From Paramicrosporidium saccamoebae KSL3 (lineage: Eukaryota > Fungi > Cryptomycota), in the NCBI GenBank assembly GCA_002794465.1, contig MTSL01000008.1, forward strand, positions 1 through 32,000: 32,000 bases of DNA. The letters are read 5' to 3'. Positions 3,457-28,087 of the stretch are shown piece after piece. The notes beneath the pieces are model-generated. The model saw only the letters and a program-made list of their open reading frames with translations, was not told the DNA's origin and searched no databases. Numbering within the stretch: the first letter of the stretch is position 1; every line of letters starts with the position of its first letter. The position numbers were made by a program, and so were the translations under genes.

Positions 3457-3682
3457 CGGGTGACACTTGGAGACTTGAATTAATTTAGCGACAGATCGAT
3501 GCCGAGTTTATTAAGCGACTCTACTGGTCGATGCAATCTTTATCAATGAAATCCAGAACCGTGATTAAAAGTAAAGGCTATTTGTGAGATTTTGATCCTT
3601 TATCCCGGCAGTCGCTCGACATGGGGTCGCCAAAATTTGAAGCCTTCGTGACCCTTGGCCCTCTATCCATCCATCATATACC

Positions 3683-4485
3683 ATGACCGCAGAATTGAAA
3701 AAGGAGGACGAACAGGTCGGATTCAGAGTATTTGTCGGCAACCTCTCATACGACATTGACACAGACAAGCTCAAGGACTACTTCGGTCAGGCTGGTGAAA
3801 TGTAAGCATCCATGGTCGTTAGAGTTTGGGATGATGATACTCATTTTGGTCTGTGTTTATGAGACTGCGTCTTTGAATTCAACTCTGGTCTGACCAAACT
3901 CCAACGACCTCCTCCATTGAGCTCTTCTAATATTTTAGTGTGGACTGCATCGCCGTGAAGCGATATGGACGCTCTGCCGGATATGGCTTTATCACTTTTG
4001 AGACCGAAGAGGCTGCCGATAAGGCTGTGGAACTAAAGGACACTGAGCTTGAGGGTCGCAAGGTCAATGTGGAGCGAGCCACTCCCCGCGACGAGAATGC
4101 GCCTCGCCGACAACGCCGCGGACGCGGTGGACGTGCACGCGGACGTGGAACCCGCACCCGCCATGAACCCAGCGGCGAGCTGTCAAAGACGACCATGTTT
4201 GTTGGAAACTTGCCCTTCAATGTCATTGATCAAGACTTGATTAACATCTTTGGTGACTATCAAGTAGAGGAGGCCCACGTCATTCGTCACTTTAATGGGG
4301 CTTCGCGTGGGTTTGGATTTGTCACCCTGACCGGCGAACAAGAGCTGCAAAAGGCAATTGAGGCCATGACCGAAGTCTTCTGTGACGATCGCAAACTTGT
4401 TGTCCGCCAGGCCTACGAAGACGACCACAAGAAGAAGCCCGCCATGGAGCATGAAATAGTCATCAAGAATGAGGCTAGTGCTTAA
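3683..4485 (+). CDS. Two-RRM protein with central RGG box (Sbp1/Tcg1-like); exons 3683-3801, 3939-4485
   Basis: RNP2 FVGNL twice, RNP1 GYGFITF and RGFGFVTL, RGRGGRARGRG linker. Intron 3802-3938 (GTAAGC...CTAAT...TAG) restores the frame. Confidence 0.88.
3814..3909 (+). ncRNA. SNORD18: Intronic box C/D snoRNA, U18/snR18 homologue
   Basis: Box C ATGATGA 3831-3837, box D CTGA 3890-3893, 16-bp terminal stem (3814-3829/3894-3909, one mismatch). Guide TTGGTCTGTGTTT 3846-3858 precedes D' ATGA and is complementary to conserved LSU AAACACGGACCAA. Confidence 0.88.
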
Positions 4486-7325: not shown

Positions 7326-7640
7326 TTTGCCAATTCTGCAACGCGGGGCAATATTATTTTGTAGTTTAAGCAATGTATAAAATGTAGACATTCGATTCTT
7401 TGGCGGATCGATCAAAGAGCTACTGATTGGTAATGTGTAGTTGGGGAGACCATTACGTGTTGCGTAGTGAAGGAGGGAGGTACGGTACCACGTCACGGGC
7501 GGGGAGAGAAATTGTTCGCTGTTAATTCAACAGCCCAAGTCAGACGAGAGGAAAGCTCGTTCACTGATACTCCTAAAAGGCCCGGCTAACCAATCCACCA
7601 CTTTACTCAACAAAGAACCGACCAATCAATCCGCTACGGC

Positions 7641-8876
7641 ATGGAGCCGTTTGGTGAACTAAGCTCTCCAGTGCCACAAGAGGAACATATTGCCAGTTCA
7701 CCATTACAATGCGACTGTGACATTTTTAATCGCTTAAAGTCTATAAGGAATGACTCTAATTGGAAGGTCGACGAGTTGGTGCGAGTCCCTGCTGCTGCCC
7801 ATGGCTATATTGACCAGCAATCGGGAAAGCAGGTCGGCTCTTATATGACATATATTATCAGCTTCTGTGTACTTTTTGGGGCTCCATGTCATGTTTCTAG
7901 GAGAATTCAGTGAGGAGGAGATATTCGGACTTTGAATTATTGCATGCGCATTTTGTTCGCGTGTATCCATACAGCATAATTCCGCCCATTCCAAGCAAGC
8001 AATCTCTGAACGGTGCCCAATTGCCTCCACTCTGATAATTTAGTGAGCATTTCGGTCATATTTGGCAAAGGGCAAGCAGAGGGCTCCCACATTGTGGATC
8101 AGCGGGTTCGCTTCTTTTGCAACTTTTTGCGTCACTCTTTGAGCCATCCGGTTCTATATGCCGACCATGTGCTGCACCTTTTCATATCAAATCCCGATGC
8201 GTCATGGAGAGCCGAGGTGATCAAGTACAACCCGGTTGAACCTAGGCCGTTTACCAAAATACCCGCTTCAGTGGGCAAGCCCTTTGAAGAGCTGCTGCTA
8301 ATGTTACTTCACTTTGAAGAAGCATGCAAGACCCTGGAGATTTCCCAGAAATCGGTTCTGAGAAAGCTCCAAGAAATTTTGCGTGGCCTAGAGTCGCTGA
8401 GCACTGCATTTAATGGATTCTCGCTGGAATATGCAGAACTTGTCGAGACGCTGGATTCTCTTGGCGAAATCTACGACGGAAACGCCACTAGCTTTGGAGA
8501 CATTGTGCTAAATCAACAAATCACCTGCGATTTAATTCACGAATTTTCCCAGTACATTGTAGCCATCCGACGAGCAGCAAGAAATGTGGCGGCACACGCA
8601 GTGCAATGGGAGATGCTCACTGAAAAGCTCAGCCACCTGCGCAGTAACGCGCTTCAACAAGGTTCAGATGGAGTCTTGGAAAATCTCGAGGCTGGCGAGC
8701 AAAACTTGGCCAAAGAGGTCCATGAAGAAAAGGAATTGTTGTGGGAGCAACTCTCTATCTGGCTTAAACGGCTGACTGCCTCCTGGAACCAAATTCTTGT
8801 CCGAGTTGCCGAGTCTGAAAAATATTACATACAACGAGGATTTGCTCTCTGGAAAGATGCTGAAGTAGCCCATTAA
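7641..8876 (+). CDS. PX-BAR sorting nexin (Snx4/Snx41-like); exons 7641-7868, 7901-8012, 8044-8876
   Basis: PX motif VRRRYSDFELLH...YP..IIPPIPSK appears only after splicing introns 7869-7900 and 8013-8043, followed by a coiled-coil BAR-like C-terminus. Confidence 0.82.
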
Positions 8877-23387: not shown

Positions 23388-23459
23388 GACTCCTTGGCGC
23401 AACGGTAGCGCGTCTGACTCCAGATCAGAAGGTTGAGTGTTCAAATCGCTCAGGGGTCA
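23388..23459 (+). tRNA. tRNA-Trp(CCA)
   Basis: Full cloverleaf: acceptor GACTCCT/AGGGGTC, D stem GCGC/GCGC, anticodon arm TCTGA-CTCCAGA-TCAGA, T loop TTCAAAT. Confidence 0.95.
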
Positions 23460-25501: not shown

Positions 25502-26491
25502 ATGGCTCCCATGCTTATGAACAAGAAGCGCAAGGTAACAATTCACTGGTGGAGGACAGTCTCGTGGTTGCTGGCGGGCGTCTGGAGCGATATGCCCTTG
25601 GGAACGCTTAGGGTCCTTGGCACACTCTCCAGGTTGCTATCCATCCATCCTCGGACTGCATTTCCGCCTTGTATATGATGATTCCCATGATTCCTCTCGT
25701 TTGAATGTCTTATTGCAACGGACGCACTGTGAATAACATGGTTGAGACTGATACAAATCCCTCTTCTTTTACTGGTGCTAACCTCGTAGTTTGTCAACGA
25801 CGGTGTTTTCTACGCTGAACTCAACGAACTCCTCACCCGCATGCTCTCTGAGGAGGGTTACTCTGGAGTCGAGGTCCGCGTCACCCCCCAACGCACAGAA
25901 GTTATTATCCGCGCTGCCCGCACCCAAAAGGTCCTCGGAGAGAACGGTCGTCGCATCCGCGAACTTACTGCTGTCGTCCAGAAGCGCTTCAAGTTCCCCG
26001 AAGGCTCCATTGAGCTCTTTGCTGAAAAGATGGAGAACCGCGGACTGAGTGCTATTGCTCAGTGCGAGTCGATGCGCTTCAAGCTGCTCTCCGGACTGCC
26101 CGTCCGTCGTGCCTGCTACGGAGTGCTCCGTTATGTCATGGAGTCTGGAGCCAAGGGTGTAGAGGTCATCATCTCCGGCAAGCTCCGTGGTCAGCGTGCC
26201 AAATCTATGAAGTTTGTTGACGGTTTCATGATCCACGCTGGTCAGCCCGTCCGGGACTACATTGATTACGCTGTCCGCCACGTCCTCCTCCGTCAGGGTG
26301 TCCTGGGCATCAAGGTCAAGATTATGCGCGACTGGGATCCCAAGGGAATCAACGGACCCAAGATGCCCCTTCCTGATGTTGTCACTATTATGGATCCCAA
26401 GGAAGACACTGCCGTCGTTGCTGCCGGTGTTCCCTCCACTGAGGCATTCGGTCAGCGTGCCGCAGCTCCCCAGCCTGAGATTGCTCAGTAA
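25502..26491 (+). CDS. RPS3: 40S ribosomal protein uS3; exons 25502-25534, 25790-26491
   Basis: NKKRK|[59 protein letters not shown]. Intron 25535-25789 (GTAACA...GCTAAC...TAG). Confidence 0.97.
25669..25756 (+). ncRNA. Intronic box C/D snoRNA, family member 1 (RPS3 intron)
   Basis: Box C 25675-25681, box D 25748-25751, terminal stem TTGTA/TACAA; near-identical copy at 26768-26854 on the minus strand. Confidence 0.85.
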
Positions 26492-26767: not shown

Positions 26768-26854
26768 GATGTCAGTTTTAACCTTGTTATTCACAGTGCG
26801 TCCGTTGCAATAAGACATTCAAACGAGAGGAATCAAAGGGAATCATCATTCATC
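26768..26854 (-). ncRNA. Intronic box C/D snoRNA, family member 2
   Basis: Box C 26849-26843, box D 26775-26772, terminal stem GATG/CATC; 51 nt identical to member 1. Confidence 0.85.
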
Positions 26855-26951: not shown

Positions 26952-27056
26952 GCAGTCGAGTCATCAGTTTAACCATAGTATTCGCAATGTATCGGGTAAT
27001 GACACCTAGAACAAGAGGTGTCAGAAATCTTTGGGAATCATCATCTGGTCGACTGC
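26952..27056 (-). ncRNA. Intronic box C/D snoRNA, family member 3
   Basis: Box C 27044-27038, D' CTGA 27024-27021, box D 26967-26964, outer stem GCAGTCGA/TCGACTGC, internal stem TGACACCT/AGGTGTCA. Confidence 0.78.
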
Positions 27057-27350: not shown

Positions 27351-27959
27351 TTAAACAACGCGTCTCACCTCAAAGAAGCGCTTCAGCGAATTGATCTGGA
27401 AGTAACAGACGGCGCCCAGCATGACAATCTGAATAAAGAACCACCACATGACACGGGAATTAGTGTTCAGAGCGACTACATAATGAGTGGATAACGGAAA
27501 ATCACCTTCACGATGCTTCGTCTCACGTTCCATGAGGAAGGCGTGTTCGTCACGGACCATACGAAGACCGTCGTTGAGTTCGCGCAGTTCGTTCTGAACG
27601 GGATCAAGCTTTGTTGCCGATTCTGCAGAGCTGCCGAGGATGCTGAAGGATGGCTTTTTGGGCGGTGTTCCAACCGGGTCCATATTCCTAAACTTGAATG
27701 AATGCACTCCCGCAGTCTTGGCTGTGAGCGCATAAGAGCCATATGTCTCTGCTGGTCCTTCGAAAATGACACCCTCCGGACTACTAAGACGGAAGCCAAT
27801 GGTGCCGTCGACATTTTGGAATTGAACGCCCCAGTTGGAGCCCTTGGCAAGGTCATCAAAGAATTCAATCTCCTTGCCGGGACGCAACTCGACAGTTTCG
27901 CACTGGACAAAGGCGACTAGTGCCGTTACCAAGACGATGAATGCGTCCAAGGCCAACAT
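27351..27959 (-). CDS. TMED2: p24-beta cargo receptor; exons 27959-27506, 27475-27351
   Basis: Signal peptide, GOLD domain, coiled coil, NTNSRVMWW, TM, tail LKRFFEVRRVV*. A 30-nt in-frame intron is predicted at 27505-27476. Confidence 0.9.
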   Translation of the reverse strand: MLALDAFIVLVTALVAFVQCETVELRPGKEIEFFDDLAKGSNWGVQFQNVDGTIGFRLSSPEGVIFEGPAETYGSYALTAKTAGVHSFKFRNMDPVGTPPKKPSFSILGSSAESATKLDPVQNELRELNDGLRMVRDEHAFLMERETKHREGDFPLSTHYVVALNTNSRVMWWFFIQIVMLGAVCYFQINSLKRFFEVRRVV

Positions 27960-28087
27960 TTCCACGGTAAAGTTATAAAATTAGTTTCGTGTTATCATTT
28001 ACGCATTCCGACCAAACATTTTAGTTCAATATGTCCACCGTCCACTGTTGCGCTGTATGTTTCGGGAGCTTTCAGTATTCCTAACTT

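Follow-up and report, generated by a model that had tools for sequence, protein, structure and literature searches.

Candidate box C/D small nucleolar RNAs of Paramicrosporidium saccamoebae with a guide complementary to the sarcin-ricin loop

The stretch studied here, hereafter the window, is the initial 32 kb of the Paramicrosporidium saccamoebae contig MTSL01000008.1 (GCA_002794465.1), to which 20,898 bases align at 100% identity and at unchanged coordinates. In it we identified two candidate box C/D small nucleolar RNAs (snoRNAs), m1 in the sole intron of the ribosomal protein gene RPS3 and m2 close by on the opposite strand, whose D' guide is complementary to large-subunit (LSU) ribosomal RNA (rRNA) at its sarcin-ricin loop (SRL). 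Evidence gathered in silico supports m1 as a complete, genuine and selectively maintained box C/D snoRNA, and also supports the prediction that its D' guide points at the G of the alpha-sarcin site. We lean modestly towards the view that m1 and m2 would guide 2'-O-methylation within the loop of the SRL. This element is among the most conserved in RNA, docks and activates the elongation-factor GTPases, and is the target of ricin- and sarcin-type toxins. Judging from their alignments, m1 and m2 are paralogues of the snR48/U60-type snoRNA, a copy of which, m3, is their neighbour; what is new is m1 and m2 as retargeted, SRL-directed snoRNAs, the parent family snR48/U60/snoR1 being already known.

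Structure of m1 and complementarity of its guide to the SRL

The m1 sequence carries the box C (RUGAUGA) and box D (CUGA) expected of its class, and both boxes are invariant in all the copies recovered (Table 1). They are enclosed by a terminal stem that covaries among the copies, the stem of L001b being only weak (L numbers are our labels for sampled sequences). The internal C'/D' motif is degenerate, with TTGA, TTTA or TCTA as D' and a TG.GAA-like C', and in this respect is no more degenerate than that of the U60-type paralogues or of yeast snR48 (PMC5389607). Nineteen nucleotides (nt) separate box C from D', and the 3' end of this spacer is TTCCTCTCGT; the initial annotation had placed this guide core directly before the D'-like TTGA, and inspection of the sequence confirmed it. 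Its count by the 5-nt rule was correct as well, with C25696 pairing with the G of ACGA[G]AGG, which we take to be G2661 of E. coli and G3028 of yeast in standard numbering.

The window holds no rRNA of the parasite. Targets were sought in seven complete, mutually divergent eukaryotic ribosomal DNA (rDNA) units from a metagenome scan, none of them from the parasite, by an ungapped, register-aware scan with all SRL-type guides; viral contigs, searched for rRNA, supplied nothing beyond a 3' fragment of an LSU (L032) and an odd small-subunit sequence (L131). The SRL sequence ACGAGAGGAA formed 10 Watson-Crick base pairs (bp) with guide positions 1-10 in all seven units, or 9 bp for copies with G at position 1, and the energy of the guide-SRL duplex was -15.2 kcal/mol. 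The arrangement expected of a guide, with 9-10 nt of complementarity to rRNA next to D or D' and position 5 opposite the target, was thus found against these seven units. The SRL was the best conserved rRNA match of the guide: it was the sole all-Watson-Crick match (10/10 or 9/9), in register with D', that was common to all seven units, and the remaining matches either contained many G-U pairs or occurred in a single unit. A match of 10-11 bp to CYGGGGGGAGUAUGG in 18S rRNA was judged weak, with 3-4 G-U pairs, and a match to 18S GCGAGAGGAAG, as long as that to the SRL, fell in a variable region of the divergent rDNA unit L147 only. The 18S site AACGAGGAAUUCC, which we take to be Gm1572, was rejected since it requires a 2-nt bulge, and the ungapped scan gave nothing there. 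No longer and better target, a prospect raised by the initial annotation, was found among the seven units, none of which contained a target of 11-13 bp.

Nine-mers common to all seven units numbered 408, and a random 9-mer would complement one of them with a chance of 0.16% (~1% for composition-matched shuffles). In reconstituted eukaryotic C/D ribonucleoproteins (RNPs), a duplex of 9-10 bp is efficiently modified and one of 8 bp is not, and position 1 is unused (PMC7229835). The assignment had at first been called speculative on the grounds of a 10-bp match and a non-canonical D'. The D' is indeed non-canonical, but the worry is eased by the descent from snR48/U60 snoRNAs described below and by a canonical CTGA at the homologous D' position in the U60-type copy of L129.

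The exact 10-mer TTCCTCTCGT occurs at three sites in the window (m1, m2 and 7544-7553 on the minus strand), compared with ~0.06 expected per 64 kb. The last of these, 7540-7553 (-), where TTCCTCTCGT is followed by CTGA, was rejected as a third member of the family, having no box C within 100 nt and no match to Rfam or to the family profile. This 14-mer, of which ~2e-4 would be expected in the window, lies in a palindromic hairpin (ACGAG-CTTTCCT-CTCGT) and is intergenic, upstream of a PX-domain gene. A site with one mismatch at 7676 lies within a plus-strand open reading frame and within chance expectation, and was discarded. A pattern describing a C/D RNA of this design, TGATGA-N(0-3)-GTTCCTCTCGN-CTGA, gave two matches in 185,579 bacterial and archaeal genomes, both bacterial and none archaeal, as pattern matches alone and with ~1 expected by chance on our own estimate.

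Descent from helix-88 guides

In Rfam, m3 matched plant snoR1 (29 bits, E=0.005; gathering score 49), m2 matched human SNORD60/U60 (20.6 bits, E=2.7; gathering score 42) with a 5-nt gap exactly in the guide, and m1 had no match; all three fall below the gathering thresholds of the families of clan CL00066. Both m1 and m2 could be aligned with m3 and with the U60-type copies of relatives, as common descent would predict, and an nhmmer profile built from the family recovered all copies at E<=1e-9, with E-values ranging from 1e-10 to 1e-20. With m1 and m2, m3 has in common its box C region, its C' box and its 3' part, but it differs in its guide (ATTTCTGACACCTCTTGT).

Three rDNA units retain the LSU helix-88 sequence GCAAGAGGUGUCAGAAA, and in these the m3 guide pairs with it over 16-17 bp (the match is written GCAAGAGGTGTCAGAAA), with position 5 opposite the first G of AAGAGG. 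On this pairing, the predicted target of m3 coincides with that of yeast snR48, a guide that lacks a CUGA-type D' and yet methylates G2791 and G2793 in helix 88 (PMC5389607). A guide to ACAAGAGGUGUCAGAAA that sets the equivalent of yeast G2791 at position 5 is present in m3 and in the U60-type copies of L001, L127, L129, L252, L253, L254 and L258, and is lacking in m1 and m2, which have an A-C mismatch at position 3. Since m1 and m2 fall short both of the Rfam threshold and of a helix-88 guide, we treat them as a retargeted variant and not as members of the family. The U60-type copy of L006 (L006 2717-2814) has two guide changes (TCTGTCACCTCTTAT) that produce mismatches with the conserved helix-88 site; this copy may be decaying, or the rRNA of L006 may be different.

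The change of guide from m3 (GATT/TCTGACA/CCTCTTGT) to m1 and m2 (GATTCCTCTCGT) amounts to the deletion of ~7 nt and one T-to-C transition. Even the ancestral-type guide forms 8 bp with the SRL (7 Watson-Crick and 1 G-U) in the same register, and the two changes bring this pairing to 10 Watson-Crick bp and cut the fit to helix 88 to 5 contiguous pairs. The locus would show in unusual detail how a snoRNA switches target, by one short deletion and one transition from an ancestor with 8 bp.

Alternatively, m1 and m2 may be redundant or decaying copies of the helix-88 guide, or non-functional pseudogenes. Their clear descent from the snR48/U60 family is in keeping with this, as is the close resemblance of the two rRNA sites, which differ by 1 base in 8 nt (ACAAGAGG vs ACGAGAGG). 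However, with only the 5 contiguous pairs, the guide of m1 and m2 forms a mismatched duplex of -12.1 kcal/mol on helix 88, compared with -28.5 kcal/mol for m3, and we rejected helix 88 as their true target on these grounds. An intact helix-88 guide, m3, lies next door, and the boxes, the covarying stem and the invariant guide are retained in six copies across saturated divergence. That m1 and m2 are mere remnants of a helix-88 guide is, in our view, scarcely credible.

Conservation in relatives and the weighing of alternatives

Relatives were found by protein searches with RPS3, the nearest loci having 79-92% protein identity. Besides P. saccamoebae, the lineages L001/L002/L003 and L006/L007/L008, drawn from contigs of JGI metagenomes and from Logan assemblies of public sequencing runs, have SRL-type copies, and in L001 and L006 the order of the cluster is Actin-like, Pelota, emp24, U60-type, SRL-type a, SRL-type b in the RPS3 intron, and NDH2. 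Four-fold degenerate sites of RPS3 are 37-52% identical among the three lineages, indicating that synonymous sites are saturated. Guide positions 2-10 (TTCCTCTCG) are invariant in 6/6 SRL-type copies from these lineages, and the longest invariant block of the six-copy alignment, ATTCCTCTCG, exceeds box C. Position 1 is T or G, which fits its taking no part in substrate binding (PMC7229835). The terminal stems (TGTA/TACA, GATG/CATC, GCTG/CAGC and GCTGTGC/GCACAGC) display double compensatory changes in 4/5 stem pairs, and the D'-C' hairpin is present in every copy with a different sequence each time. In some SRL-type copies (m2 and L001b) the D guide has decayed; the D' guide is never altered. 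Conservation, covariation and the pattern of decay argue for expressed, selected snoRNAs in which the D' guide is the selected part. The register of D' is fixed by the U60-type copies, in which position 5 falls on the known helix-88 G and D' stands in the same column, where L129 has its CTGA.

The initial annotation had described the guide as conserved, and the invariance of TTCCTCTCG across six copies and three lineages bears this out. The identity of the guide in m1 and m2, to which it had pointed, is real but carries no weight as conservation. The two RNAs (93.6% identity over 78 nt by blastn) share an uninterrupted identical block of 51 nt, TGATTCC...AATAACA, covering D', the hairpin, C' and part of the second spacer, and we rejected this identity as a sign of constraint because it takes in spacer too. 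It fits a recent duplication or gene conversion.

Several points weigh against methylation of the SRL by m1 and m2. SRL-type copies are present in only three of the nine sampled lineages that have a snoRNA at the RPS3 locus, and L127, L129, L252, L253, L254 and L258 show only the U60-type at the RPS3 intron; RPS3 of L004 (GCA_047514055.1) is without an intron and has no snoRNA there. To our knowledge, the ribosome modification maps of E. coli, yeast and human contain no modification in the SRL loop, which lowers the prior. The initial annotation likewise knew of no such methylation in yeast or human maps, and our searches of the literature turned up no 2'-O-methyl within the loop of the SRL. 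Pairing in the parasite would rest on the near-universal conservation of the SRL, and the sampled LSU L247 has A in place of the sarcin-site G, so that invariance of the SRL is not strict. In length, the duplex is close to the minimum that works, and the ancestral step from 8 to 10 bp is small and could be fortuitous. With D' degenerate and C' weak, activity and choice of site are uncertain. In addition, guide positions 11-13 (A, G/A, T) are conserved yet cannot pair with the SRL, whose next position was C in 11/11 sampled LSU sequences, all picked by an SRL pattern; this hints at another constraint or at another target, of the form CGAGAGGAAUYA. As to L247 itself (~3615-4200), this metagenomic eukaryotic LSU has the SRL AGTACGAAAGGAAC and an insertion of ~330 nt after GGGATAA near helix 88, which is possibly an intron.

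Some of these features would be expected if the SRL match were coincidental and TRATTCCTCTCG were kept for a different target, such as a clade-specific rRNA site or a small nuclear, transfer or messenger RNA containing CGAGAGGAAUYA, or for an intramolecular structure. Positions 11-13 are conserved without pairing to the SRL, the 18S match in L147 is equally long, and small changes sufficed in an ancestor that already resembled the SRL complement. RNAalifold pairs the guide, through positions 11-13, with the box-C-proximal GAUGAUUC, with one double change from CG to UA. However, every C/D snoRNA requires a kink-turn, with which such a hairpin would compete, and none of the seven rDNA units offers the 11-13 bp target that an alternative rRNA site would provide. 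A target in a variable region would not fix a 9-mer across lineages saturated at synonymous sites, and a fixed 9-mer would complement a pan-eukaryotic rRNA 9-mer by chance in only 0.2-1% of cases. We consider coincidence unlikely. At window positions 25682-25692 (+), the TTCCC/TTTCC that follows box C faces guide position 12 (G/A), as CG in the four window and L001 copies and as UA in the two L006 copies; this possible covariation could explain the conservation of positions 11-13.

The degenerate C'/D' motif raises a further possibility, namely that the snoRNAs pair with the SRL without catalysis, as a chaperone or timer by which helix 95 is held unfolded or marked in 60S assembly. The D' boxes TTGA, TTTA and TCTA and the weak C' would suit such a role, and in Tetrahymena the snoRNA TtnuCD32 is complementary over 15/16 nt to the base of the SRL stem, its predicted site is unmethylated, and a chaperone role has been proposed for it (PMC6315972). 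However, the U60-type paralogues have a similarly degenerate D', and yet their yeast homologue snR48 methylates (PMC5389607). The conserved D'-C' hairpin and the exact spacing between guide and D' suit a methylation module and are not needed for mere pairing, and invariance ends at ~10 nt, the length measured by the enzyme (PMC7229835). We find a purely structural role distinctly unlikely, and continue to prefer guided methylation.

The second guide, adjacent to box D (25735-25751 (+), 26772-26788 (-) and 26964-26980 (-), and also in the L006 and L253 copies), has the consensus AYGGTTGAA common to SRL- and U60-types. Its best conserved rRNA complement is LSU AUUCAACCA, ~790 nt upstream of the SRL, over 8-9 bp. 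In combination with box D, the guide is also similar to the 3' strand of helix 95 in some LSU sequences (GGTTGAATCTGAT vs CGTTGAATCAGAT), so that pairing with the 5' strand of this helix, immediately upstream of the SRL, could occur. Binding of both guides to helix 95 at once was set aside: the D guide is common to the U60-types and offers 8 bp only, and the C'/D' module could hardly be bridged by an rRNA linker of 4 nt, as reasoned from the architecture of a mono-RNP.

In the pathway that we infer, from expression and RNP assembly through methylation and its exact site to any physiological effect, m1 and m2 would have arisen by duplication of an snR48/U60/snoR1-type helix-88 guide, that type being kept as m3. 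Complementarity would have shifted away from ACAAGAGGUGUCAGAAA of helix 88 and onto ACGAGAGGAA, which comprises the SRL's GAGA tetraloop and 3' side (helix 95). The spliced RPS3 intron would release m1, and a transcript downstream of emp24 would release m2. Each would assemble with Snu13, Nop56, Nop58 and fibrillarin and pair with nascent pre-rRNA ahead of the folding of helix 95, and fibrillarin would methylate the 2'-OH opposite guide position 5, that of the G 5' of the alpha-sarcin cut. A neighbouring nucleotide (the ricin-site A, or a downstream A or G) could be methylated too or instead, since with D' boxes that lack the 5' C (TTGA, TTTA, TCTA) the site may shift by one nucleotide or double, as occurs in snR13, U18 and snR48 (PMC5389607).

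Genomic setting, significance and comparison with known systems

The features of the locus are collected in Table 1. P. saccamoebae sits in the nucleus of Saccamoeba amoebae and belongs to an under-studied lineage placed at the base of Microsporidia. It is a rozellomycotan parasite (PMC6349667), and the title of its genome paper, as cited there, refers to life inside cells. Relative to the conserved order in L001 and L006, the segment with RPS3 and m1 (25502-26491) is inverted in P. saccamoebae, which leaves m2 and m3 tail-to-tail with RPS3 and downstream of emp24. A CCATCCATCC motif at 25641-25652 (+) in the window is also found at L001 3789, L127 3788, L004 3972 and L006 2523; in three lineages its position is 5-25 nt upstream of the snoRNA in the RPS3 intron, and in the intronless L004 just 5' of the RPS3 start codon, and it may be a conserved promoter, 5' untranslated region or processing element. 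Elsewhere in the window, a transfer RNA gene at 23388-23459 (+; Rfam, 65.4 bits) has the anticodon loop CU-CCA-GA of tRNA-Trp(CCA), and Pfam assigned genes between 9143 and 19592 to a CHD1-like chromatin remodeller, a catalase, a PP2A-A-like HEAT-repeat protein, RIO2 kinase and an Ipi1-like protein. For RIO2, the model at NCBI (282 amino acids) is shorter than the open reading frame of 432 amino acids in the window.

Table 1. Features of the RPS3 locus and parts of the snoRNAs (window coordinates)
Feature	Coordinates	Strand	Remarks
RPS3 (uS3) exon 1	25502..25534	+	Start matches NCBI gene call in L255; compared with intronless orthologue L004
RPS3 sole intron, host of m1	25535..25789	+	GTAACA...CTAAC...TAG; frame resumes across 25534/25790
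RPS3 exon 2, through stop codon	25790..26491	+	KH_2 and Ribosomal_S3_C domains
m1, SRL-type box C/D snoRNA (candidate) in RPS3 intron	25670..25755	+	nhmmer family match E=3e-19; terminal-stem covariation
m1 terminal stem, 4 bp	TGTA 25670-25673 / TACA 25752-25755	+	
m1 box C, ATGATGA	25675-25681	+	Same in every copy
m1 D' guide core, TTCCTCTCGT	25691-25700	+	Complement of SRL ACGAGAGGAA; position 5 = C25696
m1 D'-like box, TTGA	25701-25704	+	Other copies TTTA or TCTA; CTGA at same place in L129 U60-type
m1 internal hairpin between D' and C' (GTC.../...GAC)	25705..25727	+	Hairpin in every copy, sequences differ
m1 C'-like box, TGTGAAT	25728-25734	+	Alignment consensus TG.GAA
m1 D guide, AACATGGTTGAGA, 13 nt	25735..25747	+	Family consensus AYGGTTGAA
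m1 box D, CTGA	25748-25751	+	Invariant across copies
D' guide stretch			TRATTCCTCTCGT
m2, second SRL-type snoRNA (candidate)	26768..26854	-	nhmmer E=2.9e-20; weak Rfam SNORD60 match with gap in guide
m2 parts	Box C 26843-26849; guide TTCCTCTCGT 26823-26832; D' TTGA 26819-26822; box D 26772-26775	-	Stem GATG/CATC
m3, ancestral-type paralogue (snR48/U60/snoR1-like)	26958..27050	-	Rfam snoR1
m3 parts	Box C 27038-27044; guide ATTTCTGACACCTCTTGT 27011-27028; D' TCTA 27007-27010; box D 26964-26967	-	
emp24/p24-family gene, directly upstream of m3 and m2, same strand	27351..27965	-	Pfam PF01105; gene order repeated in L001 and L006

Alpha-sarcin-type ribotoxins act as cyclising RNases, with the 2'-OH of this G as nucleophile, and a methyl there would remove the nucleophile and block cleavage; the suggestion in the initial annotation that methylation might shield the ribosome from ribotoxins appears chemically sound. 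Literature searches found no precedent for ribotoxin resistance by methylation and no description of Paramicrosporidium snoRNAs. It is a long shot that the Rozellomycota clade of Paramicrosporidium and its uncultured relatives 2'-O-methylates the alpha-sarcin-site G by means of a retargeted snoRNA, with ribosomes immune to sarcin-type toxins and the interaction with translational GTPases perhaps retuned. If true, this case would represent the first modification known from within the SRL, as well as a natural, RNA-guided 'vaccination' of the ribosome. A conserved guide RNA at the central G of the SRL is a concrete and cheaply testable prediction of a new ribosome modification; if methylation is absent, the family remains a conserved orphan snoRNA in an under-studied lineage.

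Among known systems, snR48 of yeast, SNORD60 (U60) of human and snoR1 of plants (Rfam clan CL00066) are homologous to m1 and m2, with a common D' guide core CCUCU.GU, a non-canonical D' right after the guide, the C'/D' hairpin architecture and a guide on the D' side. In contrast to these, m1 and m2 have a guide that is ~7 nt shorter, carries the T-to-C change and makes its 10 Watson-Crick bp with the SRL of helix 95 instead; m3 is an ordinary member of the snR48/U60/snoR1 type. The nearest known modification is Gm4618 of human 28S rRNA, guided by the box C/D snoRNA SNORD91 in the stem of helix 95 (PMC12288042). It resembles what we predict for m1 and m2 in being box C/D-guided and in helix 95, but the site is in the stem and not in the loop, and Rfam gave no match of SNORD91 to m1 or m2. 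By our own count along the human 28S sequence, Gm4618 presumably lies ~12 nt 3' of the sarcin-site G. Tetrahymena TtnuCD32, a U14-like C/D snoRNA, has strong complementarity to helix 95 next to the SRL and a proposed role in folding (PMC6315972). It is unlike the prediction for m1 and m2 in that its predicted site is unmethylated and that it belongs to another family. The thiostrepton-resistance methyltransferase, which 2'-O-methylates A1067 of 23S rRNA for self-protection, is a stand-alone bacterial protein that is not RNA-guided, acts at another site and blocks the binding of an antibiotic and not the nucleophile of an RNase. This enzyme nonetheless provides a precedent in which a single ribose methyl in a GTPase-associated region of the LSU blocks a ribosome-targeting toxin.

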